From: Klebsormidium nitens
Taxonomy: Eukaryota > Plantae > Klebsormidiophyceae
Direction: 5' to 3'
NCBI GenBank assembly: GCA_000708835.1
Contig: DF236956.1
Location: forward strand, 62,001-126,000
DNA: 64,000 nt
Shown: one piece after another, positions 41,564 through 62,200 of the stretch
Numbering within the stretch: the stretch's first letter is position 1
Layout of the letters: every line of letters starts with the position of its first letter
Notes under the pieces: model-generated
What the model saw: only the letters and a program-made list of their open reading frames with translations
Databases searched by the model: none
What the model was told of the DNA's origin: nothing
Position numbers and translations under genes: made by a program

Positions 41564-42621
41564 GTCACTCACTCAGAAATGAGGGGTTCTGCTGCGAGCT
41601 AGCCGCATGGCTGGCGCAAAAGAAGGCCACGTTGCAGCCCCACTAAAAAACTTCCCAATAAGCAGCATTTCAAAAATGTGCAATGCTGTGTAACTGGGCT
41701 GTTCGCATAATGCATTCTACCTGGGTTCAGCAACATTAGCCGCCAAGTGCAGCCCAAACTGACCTTGCATGCCTACGGTCCGGCCTGTGGCCCGTAACAA
41801 GGTGATCGGCACACACTGATGTTGGCGGCATCCCAGATTATTGCATGCATCTATGCACAAACGTGGCACAAACCTAGTGCACCGGGCAGAGATTGTTTCC
41901 CTGCTAAGCACTGTCGCTTCAAGCTTAATTTATGTCCGCCATCCCCCCAGACGTTGAAGTGTGGCACCTGGAGCCCTCCTGCTTCAAGTTGGCCCTTCTC
42001 TGATTACAGGCTCCGCCCTGTCAAGCCACACGCTCAGATCGAGTTACTACGGTCACAGGCAAATGCAGCTAAGCAGCTTGAGAAATCTAGCGCGCGCACT
42101 TGACAGCGCAATTTATCGACGGTAGGAAACGAAATTGCAAATCCAAAGTGAACGTCCGATTTAGCAACGCCGGCCGGTCCAAACCTCCCCATAAACCCCC
42201 ACGTTCTGGCCGAGCGCGATCGCGCGCAAGGCGCCCCCGCGGCGGCCGGCCACAGTGTACTACTAGCAAATGAAACCGAGCACGTGACACGGCAGCTTGT
42301 ATCTTGAACGGTTAACCTAGACATGGGCGAGGCGGTTGAGCGCATGTGCTCGTTGAGCAAGCCTCCTGAGAACTATTTCCGGTTTACTGAAGCTCCCTTT
42401 CTTCAGCTGTCTTTGGCAACATTTTCTTATCGAGCAACAGGCTGGCAACAGGCCCTTTATAATAAAGTTTATTCCAGAGAAAGACTTTCTGAAGAGCCTA
42501 ACCTTCCTGACGGCCTCTTTGTGCGGATATTGTGGGCCTTGCACCAGATACTAACTTCCCTAGCATGCGCTGTCCCTGCTCAACTTTGTCGTCCTGAGAT
42601 GTGGGGGCATATGCCGAGCAC

Positions 42622-45600
42622 ATGCCAAGTAAATCCTTCGATGTTTCAAAGCAAGGTCTGATGGATTCATCAGATTCTCTCGCAACTGCCAGCTCCCATA
42701 AGATGCATATGACTTTAGTAGTAATGCCTTCGACTCCAGAGCCTGCGTTTGTCAGTAAAGTCAACAGAATTGAGGACCAGGATCTTGCAATCACAAAGAA
42801 GAAGGAAAAGACTTCTCTAGTAAGAGAATCCCTCTGCAGAAAAGCCAGGAAGAGCTGCGTAGAAGAATTCTTCATCAAGCTGAATTTTCGCTGGAGATGC
42901 GAGCGAAGAGCAGCAAGGGACCTTGGTGCCGGCTCTGGCAAGGGATGAATTGCTGAGTTAAAGGCTGCAGGATCAGTTGTTGACAGTCCGTTGGTGTTAA
43001 GAGTAGGCCCAGCCAAAGGCCATGGCTTCTCATATCCTTCAAAGGCTGGGCAGCCGGAACCGTGTCAAGTGAGTCTTTCAAGCTTTCGAATCAGAGCATC
43101 AGAAGACCACTTGTGGATGATCTTGGTTACCCAGGGGTCATCATCACGGGCAGTTCTGCATAAAGCCACTTCGCTGCGCAGGTCTCTGTACTATATTTTT
43201 GAAACTGGTCCAAGAAAAACCACCTCCAAAATATGCAGGTATCGTAAAGTTGCCCATGTTTGCTGCCTTGATTCTAATCCATGTCATTTCAAAAGGTATG
43301 AGTACAAGTGCATTGCCTTTGCTTTTTGCCTGCCTTTCAAGTTGTGCCATCTTGCCGTGAATATGCTAGTCATCCTGCGTCTTTCGACTTGCTTTTAGCC
43401 TGCATTTTGCTGGCTGGTTTGCGCCCTGCTCAACATTCTGCTCTCTAAGTTGCTACGATTTACTGCAGCTAAGAGTCTGTTGTCCTGCCTGTTTCCTCAA
43501 ACGCCTGCTCTGCGCTAGGCATTCTCCCAGCTATCCAAGTACGATTCTTTGGAGTCTGCGTTGATGTGCTGAGACTCAAAGATAGCTCTTAGTACTGCAG
43601 ATTCCAGGAGCTTTATGCTGGTCAAATCTGCTTCAATCTATCCTAAGTTCGATCTTTCAGGCCGGTCCTTGAGCGAAATGCCAGCAGGCTTTCTTTGGGG
43701 AGAGGGGAGCATGATGCTGTTCTAGAGCTTGAAGCGGGTACCGCGCCAGAGGGGTGGCGCGTCTACGATGATGCGAGACCGGCTGATGGAGAGGAGGAGC
43801 TCGATCACATTCCCAATGGGGAGGACAGAGACAAACCGTGGAAGAGCTCCAAAAAGAAGTGGTTCTGGTTTGACAGTGTACTTAACCCGCATTCGAAAGC
43901 GATAAGGGTGAGCTGTTTCAGGCCATTTTCATCATTGCTACCGGTCTTGTAAAGTCATGGAACGCATAGTAACGGCTGACTTTAAATTTTATTTTCTGAA
44001 TTTACATTCACAGCGGAAGTGGATGTTTATATCCAGATTTCACGCATATCACCACGCGAGTTTTTCTGACAATTGTAATGGGACCAAGGAAGGCGTGGAA
44101 AACGTGGTTGATACTAACGGCAGAAGCATTTGATGGCAACTCTCTTCAGCAGAGCACGTTTCTCGCCTTACCGGCGAGAAGGGGACTTCTAGCCATTGTT
44201 TCTAATCCTTCTTGCACAAGACAATTGCAGAATTCGAAGCAAGCCAGGTTGAACCACGTCAATCCTAGCTTCACGCAGACTTTTCCGATCCTTTTTCCGA
44301 TCTCAACCGTCTGCAACCGGCACCTCGAGTCCTTTCTTCCTCAGACTACTTCTTCAGCTCCTCTTACGATCTTCCAACCAACTAACCATTTTGCTCCACT
44401 ACTTTTTCCCCAGCTCTGGAACCGCGTTTTCCTGCTCTCGCTGCTATGCGGCACGGTGGTCGACCCCCTCTTCTTCTACCTCCTCGCGGTCGACACCACA
44501 CTGCTCTGCGTCTACTTCCAAAAGGCTTTCGCCATCGCCGTTACCTTGTTACGCTCCATCTTCGACGAACTCTACCTTATCAACATGTGGCTCCAGTTCC
44601 GCACGGCATATGTCTCCAAGTCTTCGCTGCGCCTGGGGATCGGCGCGCTGGTGACCAGCCCGCGCAAGGTTGCCATGAACTATGTGCACGTTCTGCGCGG
44701 GGGACTCGCGCTCGACATCCTGGCCATTCTGCCGTGCCCGCAGGTACGCTTGGCGGGGTAAACGAAGCATCAAAGCGTCGATGATGAATCGCAAGAAGCG
44801 GGTGGACATCTGATGATTTTCAAGACCTGGTGTCTGCAACATCAAGAATAGGGTTTCAGAGGGAATGGTACTCAGCACACTAGACGGATTGAATGCATTT
44901 GCCAGTCGAAATAGACGCAGAAAGGAGATGAGTTAGCTGGACTCGTGCACTGCTGAAAGTTATGAAGCGATCCTTGCGTTTGACATGGTAACTACAAGGT
45001 GCGTCAATTAGTCATCGCGCAATGAACGACATGTTTTGGCCAGACAATTTGAGTTTGAGGAACTCTAATTCTATTGAATCAAGACAAGAATTGAACGACT
45101 TGATCCGTTGATTTCGTGATCTCACTCCTTTGATTGGAGACGCCACGTGGTGATACTCAGTCACATACTCATGAAATCTGTCAGCTGTCCCGCCAGCCGT
45201 TAGCCAATTGGTTCTCAGACAAGCTTTTCCTCCTATCTCTAGTTGGCCATCTGGGTCATGATGCCGAAGCTCATGACGTCAGGCAACGCGTCACAAGCGA
45301 CCACGGCGCTCCTCTTCTCCCTGCTCATCCAATTCATCATCCGAGTATTCCGCTTCCTCGCTCTAGTTCGCCGGATGCAGCGCGTAGTAGGGTACGTCTT
45401 CTGGGGCTCCTGGTGGGGCTTCGTGCTCAACCTGGCAGCCTACTGCACTGCTGCACACGTAAGCACGGTGTCGCCTGTTTTCCCGGATCACGTCAGAAAA
45501 GCGTCATTTGAGTTACGTCCCGTCTCCAGTTTCTAGCACAGTGGTCAGTTGCACGTAAGAAATACTAAGCGCTTATACATCCTTACCGTTTAAACCAGTT

Positions 45601-48600
45601 GCGTCACGTCATTTGCATCCGTTGTCTTCTTGGCACCGACGACCCTGCAAGCTTGCATTTTTCGCGAGGAGCCGGTTTACAAACGCCTCTACCGGGGCCA
45701 AAGAGGCCGGCTGTCAATCAGGCATCAGCGTAAAGATCGCAGCCTTGAGTACAGTGCACTCGAGCGGAAAGAAACATAATCTGCTCAAATTTCGTACAGA
45801 AACAGTGAGTAATCGATCCTGCCCCCCTGCGCAGGTGTTCGGCGCCCTTTGGTACCTCTTTGCCGTGGCCCGGGTGCACACCTGCCTGGCGATCCACTGC
45901 GAGCGCTACCCGGGGTGCATCCCCCACTACCTGGCCTGCAAGCCGCCTATCCAGTTCGCTAAGGATCCACACATCAGCGGCGGCCGCGCGGAGTGGTCTC
46001 TCAATGTGAATGCGACTTTGGAGTGCATGCAAGACGAGGGGTCCTTCCACCACGGCATCTACTGGAACGCGCTGCCGTTGGTGACCGGGACGAGCGTCGT
46101 GGAGAAGATGACGTTCCCCATCTTCTGGGGGCTCATGACGCTCAGGTCAGCCCTTGTGAACGGTCTTTGAAAGCAAGCGTTCTTTGATAAATTCAAGTCA
46201 ACCTATTGGAAACGGTCTTTGCAAGTTAACATTCTGTGATAAAGCTCAGGTCCGCCCTTTCAACTGGATAAATTTGAACGGTTGTTTCTAATCAATTTCT
46301 ATGAGCTGGAAGAAAGTGGTTGTATGGAACACAGCCAAGCATACCCAGCGTTTCGGCGGGCGTCTGGACTCCCTCACTTTGATATGGGTGCCGCCCTGTT
46401 CCAACTTGTTAGAACGGCTTCTAAGTGCGGAAGCATTTTTTTGAGGCCTTGAGCCCAAAACGATCGGTATGTCTGAAGCTAGGGGCTTTGTAAAAGGCGT
46501 CTCTCCTGGGCTCTGCAGCTCATTCAGCAACGCGCTCACCCCGACCGCAAATCTCACCGAGACGCTTTTCTGCGTCGTTCTCGTCATGTCGGGCCTGATG
46601 CTCTTCTCTGCGCTCATCGGAAACATCCAGGTGAGAAAGATTGAAGTTCTAGATTCCGTTCCTGAGAGACGTACGTTCTTCAAACTGCAGCTCTTTCTGC
46701 AACTCGCTCACGCCGACCGATAACCTCCCCGAGACGCTCTTCAGCCTCGTCATGGTTCTGTCCGGCCTGCTGCTCTTCTCCGCACTGATCGGTAACATAC
46801 AGGTAAGCAAGTACGGGAAAATCACTTGTTGGCTTTGAGATGATAGACCGTCGAGAATGAAGCACTCAAATGCGCTCTGCTGTTCTCCTCCAGGCAAAAT
46901 GAAAGAGACCCAGTAAGCACTCAGGATTCTGGAACTTTCATCAACATTGGGCTTTACGCTTCTGTACTCTGGCTTTGACAAGGCTTGGTATATCACTCCG
47001 ACGCTCCTCCACGTAAGCACAGCTTCCAAGCATTAAGGTGTTTGAAATTTTCGCGAGAGAGCCAAGTCGTTTTCGTCTCGCGCTTCCTTCTCCAGGTGTT
47101 CTTCCAGTCGCTCTGGTCGCGCGTGGACAGAATGCGCGAGCGGCGGCAGGACTTGGAGTGGTGGATGGCGCGGCGCGCGCTCCCGCGGCCGCTGCAGGAG
47201 CGCGTGGACGACTACGAGCGGCAGCACTGGGCGGCGACACGTGGCATCGACGAGGAGGCCATGACACGTGACCTGCCTGAGGGGCTGCGGAGGGACATCA
47301 AGCGGTACCTGTGCCTCGATCTCGTTAGAAAGGTGGGTTAGCAAATGAAAGCTCTGAATAAAGCTTACGAAATTTACGAGCAGAACCTTCCGGGCGTGGT
47401 GAAGGCTTGGCTTGTTTGCTTGTCTGTGCGCTAGGAAGAGGTTGTGCAAAACCATAGTACGTTATGAAAGTAGGAGAGGAAAGTCTCGGAACTGATAAAG
47501 AATGTTTTGAGGTAGAAGGGATGTATTAAAAGGCCGTTATCGCCCGAGAAATTAAACCAGCACTCGAAATAGATTGCCCCGTCAGCAGCCAAGATAGAGA
47601 ACAGTGAGACGGTGGGGCATCTCTCAGAGGGAGGCGTTGCTTCAGAGCAGTAATGCTCGTCCGAAGCTTCGCCCTCCGCGCGCGTGCAGATACCGCTGTT
47701 TTCATACACCGACCCGCTGCTCCTCGACATTCTGTGCGAGCGGCTGCGCCCCGCGCTCTTCACGCGCGGCCTCGTCGTCGTGCGCGCGGGCGAGCCTGTG
47801 CAGCGACTCTTACTGCTGGTGCGCGGCCGCCTGCGCAACGTGCATACGGTCGGGGGCCGGCCCAGTGTCGTCATCTTGGGCCCGGGGAACTTCACCGGGG
47901 AGGAGCTGCTCACGTGGGGGCTCGCGCGCACGGCGGACCGGAACCGCCTCCCGCTCTCCGCCGCTAGGTCAGTTCCGGAATGGCCCGCCCCTCAAAGATT
48001 TCGCGCTTCTTGTGACCCTCTGCATCCCCGACTAGATTCAGGAAAGGGAGCCGACTTGTTCGCCCTTTTCAAATAACTTCAGGGCTACAAGTCGGAGATA
48101 AACAACCAAGGGTGACTCGAGGCGGGCAGCAAAGAATTTGAGCACTCATTTGGGGTGCTTGTCAACTGGAACCCTGTGATGCTCGTGACGGAAGCGGGGT
48201 CTACAGGATAGATTCTTGGAGTCACATCATAGTAAACGATATGGATCGAGGTTCGTCAAGTGTCCTGCTGGAAACGGCGCATGTGGTCCGAAGCTTGTTT
48301 GGCACCACGACTTGGGCATTGTGCCGCTTCGGATTGCTCAACGGGTCACTTTGTTGTGGTGGATCTGCACTCCTCGGAAAGTGACTGACTGACCAGGATG
48401 ACAATCTAGTTTAGCTTGTTTGTGCATCCGCAACTGCGTTGATTCCAGTGAGTAATTCAAGATCAACTCTTATTGCAGCAGAGACTATACTCTGCTTTGG
48501 TGCCAACTCTTGATCCTCGTTGTGCAGCCTGGAGTGCGTTGACACCGTTGAGGCGTTCGCGCTGGAGGCGGATGACCTGATGTACGTTACGTCGCACTTT

Positions 48601-49199
48601 CAGCAGCGTTTACAGAGCAAGAAGTTGCGGCACACCATCCGACACTACTCGCCGGTGAGATGCGCTCCATTCGACTCGTTGATCGGATCTGTTCGCACAA
48701 TCATGCCTTTTAAAGTGTGCCTCTTCGTGCGTCCGCCTGCTTCAAAAAGATATACGCTGTCAATCTATCCAGAAGCACATAGGCAACACTGCCGGCCTGT
48801 GTGTCCAATCCAACTTACCCAGTCTCTGCTGGCCGCTGCCTATCTTGCTGCGTCGATTCTCCAAGAAGCGCAAGCGTCTTGTAGCTGAAAGAACACGACT
48901 TACCGCATGCGCGCTAGATCCACAACTAGATCCACCCTTGCATAAAGTGAGCCCGTAACGCCAAACCCAAGTCTTCATTTTCATCTCAACAGCACTGGCG
49001 CACGTGGGCGGCGGTGACCATTCAATTATCCTGGCGACGCCACAAGGCGGCCGCGAAGGCCCATGGCGCGCGGCCGCGCCTGTCCTTGTCCGGCCTCGCC
49101 GCGCTGTCGGGCCAGCCGACCGACGACCCCGCGCAAAGTGCGCGCAGCAAGCTGCGAATGTACACTGCCATGTTTACGTCGCCGAAACCGCAAGATTAG
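42622..49199 (+). CDS. CNGC: Cyclic nucleotide-gated channel, group IV-B (CNGC2/CNGC4-like), CNGC-a
   Basis: Confident exons: 43661-43907, 44414-44743, 45243-45458, 45835-46145, [46519-46630 or 46691-46802], 47096-47332, 47690-47967, 48528-48654, 48993-49199. The 5' exons 42622-42819 and 43135-43181 are tentative. Motifs: WNRVFLL...VDPLFFY, FPIFWGLMTLS pore helix, C-linker LEWWM...LPEGLRRDIKRYLCLDLV, CNBD GNFTGEELLTWGL, IQ motif IQLSWRRHK. Confidence 0.93.
46519..46630 (+). CDS. CNGC-a pore/S6 exon, variant A (SSFSNALTPTANLTETLFCVVLVMSGLMLFSALIGNIQ)
   Basis: ctgcag| ... cag|gtgaga; 112 nt; phase 2 to phase 0; no stops. Confidence 0.85.
46691..46802 (+). CDS. CNGC-a pore/S6 exon, variant B (SSFCNSLTPTDNLPETLFSLVMVLSGLLLFSALIGNIQ)
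   Basis: ctgcag| ... cag|gtaagc; 112 nt; same phases as variant A; nearly identical in protein to the single pore exon of CNGC-b (61669-61780). Confidence 0.9.
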
Positions 49200-59214: not shown

Positions 59215-62200
59215 TTAATCCTGCGGCTTGGGCGACGTAAACATAGCAGTGTACATGCGCAACTTGTCCCTCGTCGGGTCGTCGGTAGGCTGCCCCGGGA
59301 CCGGGACGAGGCCCGAGGCCGTGCGCGGGCCGCGGCTCGCAGCGGCCGCCTTGAAGCGCCGCCACGTCAGCTGAATTGTCACGGCCGCCCACGTGCGCCA
59401 ATGCTGTGACAAAACGAAAGAGCTAATTGAAACCTTGGTGCCGCTCTTCTAAGAACCGCATCAATTATCCGAAACCTCTAGTCCCACAAACAGGTCAGAC
59501 AACCCGCCTTTTGGTCAGCGTACTAGCTGGGATCTGCAAGGTTTCTTTGACACTGTCCGTCATTTTCTCACAAAAACGAAGTTTTACGAGGCTCTTGGAC
59601 TTCTCCTAAAGACTGCCGACCAATTCTGCACAATGAATCCAGTCAGCCCTTTGTACTGATGCTTCAGTAATGATGACAGACTCAGCGCTCAGTGGGCTGG
59701 ACAGTCCACGATATCTCGTTACGGATGCATGCGGCGTGTGATAGTGGGTCGCTCAAACAAGAGGTCGTCAGACCAAGTGACAAAATTCTAACCACTTCGT
59801 AACCAGTTTATGTTAGACGAATTCGACTGGGCGGAGTGAGGTTGATAACACCGCCAGGATATATAAGCAAGGGGCTCAGGATAGAATCTTACCGGCGAGT
59901 AATGTCGGATCGTGTGCCGCAGTTTCTTGCTTTGCAGGCGCTGTTGAAAGTGCGACGTGACGTACATCAGGTCCTCCGCCTCCAGTGCGAACGCCTCCAC
60001 GGTGTCAACGCACTCCAGGCTGCGTAAGACGACAGAATTTGACGAAACAAAGAAGAATCGGCAGACGTCCCTGCAGTGTCATTTGCATCAAACTTACAAG
60101 CTGACGACTCGGCTAAAACAGAGCCTGACGTTTGAAGCTCGAGACAAATCTGTGGGTAAATATGTTGTGGGAATATCGGAAACAGCAAGTTTGTCGCCGG
60201 CCCGCGGATACAGCCTTCCGAACAGATGCAGCACGAAATGCTCTTTTAATACTTCGTTGGCTTTAGCCTTGGGAAGAACTTCTTCTGACTCTGCACTCTG
60301 AGAACTTCTCACTTCGTCTCAGGTCGATCTGTCGTTGAAGGACTAAAAGTTACTACGCAGAAGAGTATTTTGCGGGACATCTTCCGAGAAGCCTAGAGGC
60401 GCAATCCGTTCTCCTCGATCTGCTCGATCAAACCCCAACCTTAATGCGTCCCGTTTGTTTCAACGGTCGCGAATGAAATCGTGGCAAGACAGCGGGAAGT
60501 GTTCGAAAAGAGCATAGTCGGGCGGACCTGGCAGTGGACAGCGGCAGGCGGTGCTGGTCAACCGTCCGCGCGAGCCCCCACGTCAGCAGCTCCTCCCCGG
60601 TAAAATCCCCCGGGCCCAAAATTGCGACACTGGCGCGTCCTCCAACTGAGTGCACGTTGCGCAGGCGGCCGCGCACCAAAAGTAAGAGCCGTCGCACGGG
60701 CTCGCCGTCGCGAACTAGAACGAGGCCGCGCGTGAAGAGCACTGGGCGCAGCCGCTCGCACAGTATGTCGAGGAGCAGCGGGTCGGTGTACGAGAACAGC
60801 GGGATCTGCGCGCGCGCGAGCAGTCGGAAACTTATCTCAAAAGGGGGTTGGAGAGGCAAAGGACGAAGCGCTTAAGTTTCAGACGTTGAACCTTTGTGGG
60901 CCGCGCTTCATCATCGAAGCAGACTCATCAATCTCCTTAAAAGAAGAAGTGTGACCACAGAGTAGTACTTGACTTCTCTCCCCACAACTGGTTTGAACGA
61001 CTTTCATTTCTGTCGCTTTCGTTCCTCCACTTCAAACTTTCTCGCTTTTGAGTGACCAAGTTTTGCCTCGAAGCTCTTCACCTTCTTGACGAGGTCTAGG
61101 CAGAGGTAGCGCTTGATGTCCCGCCTCAGCCCCTCCGGCAGATCTGCAATCATGTTCTCTTCGTCGATTCCCCGGGTAGCCGACCAGTGCTGCTGCTCGT
61201 AGTCGTCAACGCGCTCCTGAAGCGGCCGCGGCAGCTGCCGCCGCGCCATCCACCACTCCAGGTCCTGCCGGCGCGAGCGCATGCGGTCCACACGGATCCA
61301 AAGCGACTGGAAGAACACCTGGGGAAGACAAGCAGAGAAGAGACACCTCAATCAAGTTACTTTTTTGGGGTGGTGTTCAGACCGAGGCAGAAAAGAAATT
61401 GGAATGAGCGCGTCACTCACAAGAATACTGACGCGCTTTGGACGGTACAAGGACAAAACGGGACACAGCCCTTTAATTCCTCGGATCGCTGAGAAGACCG
61501 GAAAGGCAGAAGCTTTCCGGCTCTCATACCTTGCTCAAAGCTTAGGTGCAAGGATCGAGAGAACCTGGAAAAGAGCAGCTGGCCTTCCAGTCACCGAAAA
61601 CAAAATGCGGAATTCCAAAGTTCCATGACTATGAATCTAACTTGAAAGCAAGAACTTGAGGTGCCTACCTGAATATTACCAATGAGCGCGGAGAAGAGCA
61701 GCAGGCCTGACAAGACGAGGACGATGCTGAAGAGGGTCTCGGGGAGGTTATCTGTGGGCGTGAGCGAGTTGCAAAACGAGCTGCAAAAGCAACACAGAAT
61801 GCGAAAGGTTTGTTGATTCGTGGAGGAGGGGATTGTACTGAGCACTTAGCTACTTGTTCCGTCGGACTTTCTCGTTTTCGCTTTCGTCGTCCACCGTTCG
61901 GATTGAAAGGTTTCCTGCATTTCTGCGCAAATCATGGCTGATCACCCGAACGGGAGTTTGTGAAAGAAGATTGGCTATCTTTCATTCAGAGATTCCGCAA
62001 TAAAAAGACCACGTTTTTAAGAAATGGGATGCTGTCTTCTCTTCAAACCCAATCATGTTGCACTTCAAGTAGTGAGATTGAACAAGTAGCAAAGATCTTT
62101 TTGCAGCACATCCACTCAAGCTCTATGAGTGTGCAAGAAACCTTCCTGATCTCCATACTTTCTCGTGCGGGTGACTCACCTGAGCGTCATGAGACCCCAG

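Follow-up and report, generated by a model that had tools for sequence, protein, structure and literature searches.

Can a single channel gene of an alga supply two alternative pores by choosing between two neighbouring exons? The question is raised by a locus of Klebsormidium nitens in a 64,000-nucleotide stretch of contig DF236956.1 (assembly GCA_000708835.1, positions 62,001 to 126,000, forward strand; hereinafter, the window), where a gene for a cyclic-nucleotide-gated channel (CNGC), denoted here gene 1, occupies approximately 42.3-49.2 kb on the plus strand and carries the exon for the selectivity filter and transmembrane segment S6 in two tandem copies. These copies, exon A (SSFSNALTPTANLTETLFCVVLVMSGLMLFSALIGNIQ; 46519-46630, with the filter S-F-S-N, the post-filter loop and S6) and exon B (SSFCNSLTPTDNLPETLFSLVMVLSGLLLFSALIGNIQ; 46691-46802, with the filter S-F-C-N followed by the same elements), are both on the plus strand and were identified by direct reading. 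Plant CNGCs are major Ca2+ entry channels whose tuning of selectivity and gating is an active question and whose first structures appeared in 2025; land plants owe their CNGC diversity to large numbers of genes and to heteromers. Our conclusion, held with slightly better than even confidence, is that A and B are a mutually exclusive exon pair used in an either/or fashion; the broader proposition, that mutually exclusive splicing provides K. nitens with one CNGC subunit in two pore versions and that the same device arose again in a neighbouring paralog, appears to us evenly balanced. The pair is read in this manner because of its anatomy, the logic of the reading frame, its age, the selection on both copies and the parallel pair in the paralog (gene 3), in a gene that is transcribed.

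The anatomy of the pair fully bears out the sequence-only reading that first drew attention to it. Each copy is 112 nt long, with the same phase, a CAG before it and a GT after it, and the two are separated by a spacer of only 60 nt that itself begins with GT and ends with AG (46631-46690, plus strand); on re-reading and recomputation, the length, phase, canonical splice sites, spacing and freedom from indels and stops came out as stated, as did the borders of the flanking exons at 46145 and 47096. The copies are identical at 89 of the 112 nucleotides, with zero indels and zero in-frame stops, and a recount of the codon differences gave the same 12 synonymous and 9 non-synonymous ones, the substitutions being distributed over codon positions 1, 2 and 3 as 8, 1 and 14. 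A repeat finder ranked A/B first among the direct repeats, at a length of 127 nt, with 80% identity and a spacing of 172 nt. The similarity ends a few bases beyond the exon borders, and none of the three segments around the copies (the intron upstream of A, the spacer, the intron downstream of B) resembles another, or the introns of the paralog, more than shuffled controls do, so that a chance likeness of A and B is excluded.

Only single inclusion of A or B yields a productive mRNA. Inclusion of either exon alone gives an open frame of 695 amino acids; when both are included, the frame closes 18 codons into B, at a stop that precedes the last junction by 721 nt; skipping of both exons produces a stop in the next exon, and retention of the spacer likewise results in an early stop. 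The earlier argument that both-or-neither transcripts shift the frame thus stands, with early stops in both cases.

To date the pair, we compared synonymous (dS) and non-synonymous (dN) divergence, estimated by the Nei-Gojobori method (omega, dN/dS), with that among the three CNGC paralogs that lie within about 30 kb at this locus and show much the same divergence from one another (dS about 0.65). Gene 1, on the plus strand, is convergent with gene 2 (P0001), on the minus strand, and gene 3 (P0124) lies upstream of gene 2, just outside the window. Pairwise, the paralogs show dS of 0.64-0.68 and dN of 0.14-0.17, with gene-wide omega of 0.22-0.26; for A versus B, dS is 0.70, dN 0.13 and omega 0.19. 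Given the closeness of these dS values, the exon duplication seems to be about as old as the local three-gene family. The silent distances of A to the paralogs, 0.52 for gene 3 and 0.97 for gene 2, track those of the exons that flank A; those of B are nearly equal for both paralogs (0.62-0.72), and omega for B against the paralog exons is 0.04-0.08. A tree built from the exon copies has poor resolution but in no case pairs A with B.

How much decay such a time span would bring can be gauged from gene 3 and its ortholog in another Klebsormidium (L004): at dS of 0.376, identity between their introns is down to 53-62%, and an indel occurs every 44 nt. That A and B, at a longer dS, are 79% identical, free of indels and stops and intact at all four splice dinucleotides is not what would be expected of a neutral 112-nt segment. 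When the observed nucleotide differences of each copy were placed at random and trials with as few amino acid changes and no stop were counted, the resulting p value was 0.011 for A and 0.0002 for B; for the null hypothesis that one copy is neutral in each of two pairs, with synonymous and non-synonymous changes pooled over genes 1 and 3, p is about 0.004. Thus, B, which differs from the single exon of gene 2 by two residues, is certainly under coding constraint, and A is probably so, with moderate support. The substitution pattern fits the earlier claim of selection on both copies (omega of 0.19, with the two neutral-placement values).

The same exon is also duplicated in gene 3 (L001:10001-16088). 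Its first copy, the annotated one (L001:13485-13596; C-N-S ... DDLP), is followed after 31 nt by a divergent one (L001:13628-13739; C-N-A ... DDFS); each is 112 nt long and intact, and the pair, 23 kb from A/B, shows dS of 0.38 and omega of 0.10, with neutral-placement p values of 0.0055 (annotated copy) and 0.015 (divergent copy). The gene 3 pair thus resembles A/B in belonging to the same exon of a sister CNGC, in exon length and phase, in a spacer below the normal intron size and in the frame logic; it differs in being younger (dS of 0.38 versus 0.70), in the 31-nt spacer and in having the canonical copy upstream, with the divergent copy downstream, the opposite of the order in gene 1. The gene 3 duplication is probably independent of that in gene 1 because its copies cluster together, apart from A and B, and because the order is reversed.

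As a separate observation on gene 3, the intron that follows the pore exon begins with the same 12 nt (GTAAGCACCTAC) after both copies (L001:13597-13608 and L001:13740-13751) and in the ortholog (L004:745-756), the remainder of the intron being saturated; this intron start may be a conserved splicing element.

The splice sites were scored with a matrix built from the remaining introns of the three genes, 25 in all. The donor of A beats 22 of the 25 reference sites, and its acceptor is average (better than 9 of 25); B has a strong donor and a weak acceptor that beats only 1 of 25. Weak acceptors are common for alternative exons. The 25 introns are 275 to 1315 nt long, compared with the spacers of 60 nt in gene 1 and 31 nt in gene 3; by spliceosome geometry, a 31-nt intron is not removable, and 60 nt is the lower limit in plants. 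A scenario compatible with these features would start with a 172-nt tandem duplication that copied the filter/S6 exon at about the time when the local three-gene family arose. The donor at 46145 would then join the acceptor of either A or B, and the choice of exon would amount to competition between the two acceptors. Where A is chosen, its donor would be too close to the B acceptor, 60 nt away, with probably no room for a spliceosome, and would join 47096; mRNAs with both exons or with neither would carry a frameshift and a stop far ahead of the last junction, such that nonsense-mediated decay could act as a backstop. The outcome would be two subunits identical save for 9 residues in the filter flanks, the post-filter loop and S6. 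We infer that A and B each reach the mRNA, that the 60-nt spacer is not spliceable, that the frameshifted forms decay and that the isoforms differ functionally. RNA pairing of the docking/selector kind was considered as well; the candidates were weak inverted repeats of 11-16 nt with 75-91% pairing, which we take to be chance.

Gene 1 is transcribed and spliced, at a low level. Three small RNA runs contain words of gene 1, namely, X1 and X2, with 5-6% of the words in a first search, and X25, and RNA contigs cross the joints 43907^44414, 44743^45243 and 45458^45835, together with an alternative donor near 45390, all at 100% identity; they also span, at the same identity, part of the exon 45835-46145 and of the last exon. 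The alternative donor, seen in a contig from X25, is a GT 68 nt inside the exon 45243-45458 (joining 45390/45391 to 45834/45835), and, since it shifts the frame, it defines a non-productive splice variant of gene 1.

Several observations weigh against mutually exclusive use. No contig covers 46083-48947 in the three RNA runs that hold gene 1, so that neither A nor B is seen in a transcript; this gap says little, however, because long identical words shared with the paralogs probably break the assembly graphs in this region. The branch likelihood test of omega_A = 1 depends on the topology, with p = 0.0006 under two topologies and p = 0.20 under the best-fitting one, so that we lean on the codon counts and the simulations instead, and the exon comprises only 37 codons, which leaves all the selection tests with low power. 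In exon A, 5-7 replacements are lineage-specific, and some of them (C to S, D to A, P to T) hit positions that are fixed in all other copies; this surplus relative to B could reflect relaxed constraint. No ortholog of gene 1 was found by the search of metagenomic relatives, with a degenerate exon-end pattern or by protein-fragment searches. A single pore exon is present in gene 2, in the gene 3 ortholog L004 and in a more distant metagenomic relative (L002), and in the introns of these three genes no relics of a lost second copy were detected above shuffled sequences. Furthermore, splicing of the exon-skipping type is uncommon outside animals. The occurrence of such splicing outside animals is discussed in PMC6142364, and the main text of the K. 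nitens genome paper does not mention introns. Searches for spliced protein fragments returned only a genomic fragment, the gene 3 ortholog, for the query P0124:337-434 and only P0002 for the query window:45700-46167.

Much of this would also be compatible with B being the only exon in use and A being a silent or rarely used pseudo-exon that either has not yet been disabled or has been kept similar by occasional gene conversion. The protein sequence of B is nearly identical to that of the single exon of the paralogs, and the divergent copy is the one with the lineage-specific replacements, for which neutrality is not rejected on the best tree and for which no transcript is seen. Nevertheless, we regard this alternative as rather unlikely. 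Exon A lies upstream of B with the better acceptor and a strong donor, so that it would have to be actively ignored or else would poison the mRNA when joined with B; it has retained its AG and GT and has acquired neither a stop nor an indel at a divergence at which introns are saturated, and its changes are skewed to synonymous ones (p = 0.011). Gene conversion, for its part, would leave identical tracts rather than scattered silent differences. The converse possibility, that only A is used and B is skipped harmlessly as the 60-nt spacer is not spliceable, would accord with the position of A in front, with its better acceptor (that of B being above 1 of the 25 only) and with the silent distances of A to the paralogs, which follow those of the flanking exons; it is quite improbable given that B is the most constrained copy (omega of 0.04-0.08, p = 0.0002), which is unexpected of an unused exon.

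A different kind of explanation is regulated unproductive splicing, whereby one copy would serve mainly as a poison exon, joint inclusion would introduce a premature stop and lower the amount of channel, and the coding content of the extra copy would be irrelevant. In its favour are the stop in the A+B form, located 721 nt ahead of the last junction, and the non-productive variant of this gene already seen near 45390; however, a poison exon would have to preserve nothing but its length and splice sites, whereas the peptide of each copy shows purifying selection, and joint inclusion would require splicing of a 60-nt intron (31 nt in gene 3) where the other 25 introns are at least 275 nt long. 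We therefore consider a poison exon improbable. An assembly artefact, in which merged haplotypes or reads from paralogs created a false tandem, is very unlikely, and nothing was found in its favour: the copies are 21% diverged, their flanks are unrelated and each has proper splice sites; neither is the same as the corresponding exon in gene 2 or gene 3, and a second pair with a different spacing lies 23 kb away on the same scaffold. Should mutually exclusive use of A and B give way to the use of only one exon, the locus would still illustrate well for how long a copy of an exon can remain intact although unused.

What, then, would a choice between A and B change in the channel? The duplicated exon starts one residue before the filter and spans the post-filter loop and all of S6, up to ...LIGNIQ, the pore helix being encoded in the preceding exon. 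In the solved structures of AtCNGC1 (9j34), AtCNGC5 (9j35) and MtCNGC15b (9kcu), the filter S-L-G-Q aligns with S-F-[C/S]-N of gene 1, and S6 is collinear; specifically, S344-L-G-Q347 of MtCNGC15b aligns to S-F-C-N in B and S-F-S-N in A. In MtCNGC15b, Q347 is the residue at the constriction that determines Ca2+ selectivity (PMC12284214). Unlike the solved plant channels, gene 1 has asparagine at the constriction, not the glutamine that is conserved in most plant CNGCs, preceded by C or S instead of G. Between B and A, the filter differs by C/S before the asparagine and S/A after it (C-N-S versus S-N-A), the post-filter loop by D/A and P/T (TDNLP versus TANLT), and the outer two thirds of S6 by S/C, L/V, M/L, L/M and L/M; the filter asparagine and the inner end of S6 are the same in both. 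The placement of these differences in the filter, loop and S6 matches the earlier description, and the alignment agrees that C-N-S and S-N-A occupy the position of G-Q-N in AtCNGC1; the comparison with A-N-D in AtCNGC2 was not confirmed, the CNGC2-like matches in this analysis having mostly G-N-D. The further proposal, that the isoforms differ in ion selectivity or redox sensitivity, is weakened: because the constriction residue is the same in both copies and only its two neighbours differ, a selectivity switch is only a conjecture, and a change in redox sensitivity is equally speculative.

In the land-plant relatives retrieved, the residue before the filter asparagine is nearly always G, and the one after it is D, L, A or E. 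In the CNGCs of Klebsormidium, C or S replaces this land-plant glycine immediately ahead of the filter N/Q (window 46526-46534 and 46698-46706; L002:10796-10907); the filter cysteine, itself unusual, is common to gene 2, gene 3, exon B and the metagenomic relative L002.

Mutually exclusive exons for pore, S6 or gating segments are familiar from animal channels, such as CACNA1C exons 8/8a (IS6), the sodium-channel exons 5N/5A, and insect para and slo. Like the pairs in animal Ca2+, Na+ and K+ channels, A and B are tandem exons of equal length and the same phase that apparently originated by tandem duplication and vary in a pore-lining or gating segment; the inclusion of one of the two, by analogy, is what we propose here. 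Unlike the animal pairs, which are backed by transcripts and electrophysiology, the pair in gene 1 is known from genomic sequence, belongs to a CNGC of a streptophyte alga and comprises an exon with the whole filter. A full-text literature search gave no report of mutually exclusive exons in any CNGC or in Klebsormidium, in agreement with the earlier statement that no CNGC example was known; also, no report of alternative pore exons in the AtCNGC1, AtCNGC5 or MtCNGC15b genes was found in the literature. Mutually exclusive splicing as such is a known phenomenon, and a CNGC filter/S6 pair would be new only if transcripts confirm it. If confirmed, this would be the first time that a CNGC of the plant lineage is seen to switch its pore through mutually exclusive exons, evolved in parallel to those of animal channels, and a splicing-mediated swap of the filter/S6 module would represent another route to pore diversity, one that is otherwise mainly found in animals. 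For electrophysiology, the two isoforms would be naturally occurring variants of the filter flanks and S6 in an otherwise identical channel, and the locus would be a rare, well-defined non-animal case with a built-in comparison, given that a pair of old exons, a younger pair and a paralog with a single exon all lie within 30 kb.

The classification of gene 1 as a plant-type CNGC follows from homology and from alignment to the solved channels, in accord with the initial identification of the gene and of the filter, loop and S6 in the duplicated exon. A homolog search names P0001 and P0124 as cyclic-nucleotide-gated channels of Klebsormidium nitens encoded on scaffold DF236956.1, P0001 being first matched through the exon that precedes the pair; exon by exon, gene 1 shares about 78-80% identity with P0124 and P0001, and its exons are collinear with both. 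P0124 in turn matches AtCNGC1 (9j34) with E = 8e-134 over residues 69-637 and MtCNGC15b with E = 4e-128. In the window, the segment 47690-47965 scores 26.3 bits against Pfam cNMP_binding, slightly below the cut-off of 27.5, and this domain aligns to that of the solved CNGC1. The plant CNGC signature, which covers the phosphate-binding cassette and the hinge and was applied as a regular expression, matches gene 1 (LGPGNFTGEELLTWGL...VEAFAL; residues 547-589, numbered on the model that omits exon 1), and the last exon contains an IQ-type calmodulin site (WAAVTIQLSWRRHK) that aligns with the IQ region of AtCNGC1.

The ten-exon model of gene 1, obtained by six-frame reading and tblastn, has all its exons on the plus strand. 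A putative first coding exon at 42323-42345, an ATG and 20 nt followed by GT, lies outside the RNA contigs and is called because its length of 23 nt and its phase equal those of exon 1 in both paralogs, as threaded exactly from the paralog proteins. Exon 2 (43661-43907) encodes the N-terminal cytosolic part, as indicated by the frame and by the joint 43907^44414 in an RNA contig of X1; exon 3 (44414-44743) encodes the S1-S3 region and has both flanking joints in RNA contigs of X1 and X25; and exon 4 (45243-45458), whose joints 44743^45243 and 45458^45835 are in RNA contigs and within which X25 has the alternative donor, encodes the S4-S5 region. Exon 5 (45835-46145), supported by RNA contigs over 45835-46064, by tblastn and by the frame, encodes S5, the turret and the pore helix and ends with ...FPIFWGLMTL in phase 2. 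Downstream of the A/B pair, the exon 47096-47332 encodes the C-linker, as judged from frame and homology; the exon 47690-47967 is assigned the cyclic-nucleotide-binding domain, from the Pfam score slightly below the cut-off and the plant CNGC motif; the exon 48528-48654, again by frame and homology, completes this domain; and the last exon (48993-49199) encodes the IQ-like motif and the stop, with an RNA contig of X2 over 49039-49191. No gene 1 protein is found among the database matches to its 78%-identical paralog or to single exons of gene 1; the public K. nitens annotation may thus lack a model for this gene, perhaps owing to the duplicated exon. The neighbouring gene 2 extends on the minus strand from 59218 to beyond 64000, past the end of the window, and its single B-like pore exon, used above for comparison, is located at 61669-61780 on the minus strand.

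Outside K. nitens, a distant CNGC in L003 (GCA_947470075.1; 12900-14200) shows a partial likeness to A/B in having tandem repeats of the pore-helix end and of part of S6, namely, two copies of the former and one full and two truncated copies of the latter, through which the predicted protein P0004 reads. Unlike in A/B, the extra copies are truncated, with 5' halves that are unrelated or gapped, as is typical of non-functional relics, and they look like decaying tandem copies.

Small duplications are also present next to the pair itself. In the intron that precedes exon A, the exon-end/donor boundary is copied (window 46135-46259), with ATGACGCTCAGGTCAGCCCTT at 46135 and ATAAAGCTCAGGTCCGCCCTT at 46239, and the same intron contains a 38-nt tandem repeat, 79% identical at a spacing of 52 nt (46154-46191 and 46206-46243). 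Evidently, several small tandem duplications occurred in the neighbourhood of the exon pair, and the second GT, in the copy at 46239, could function as a decoy donor.

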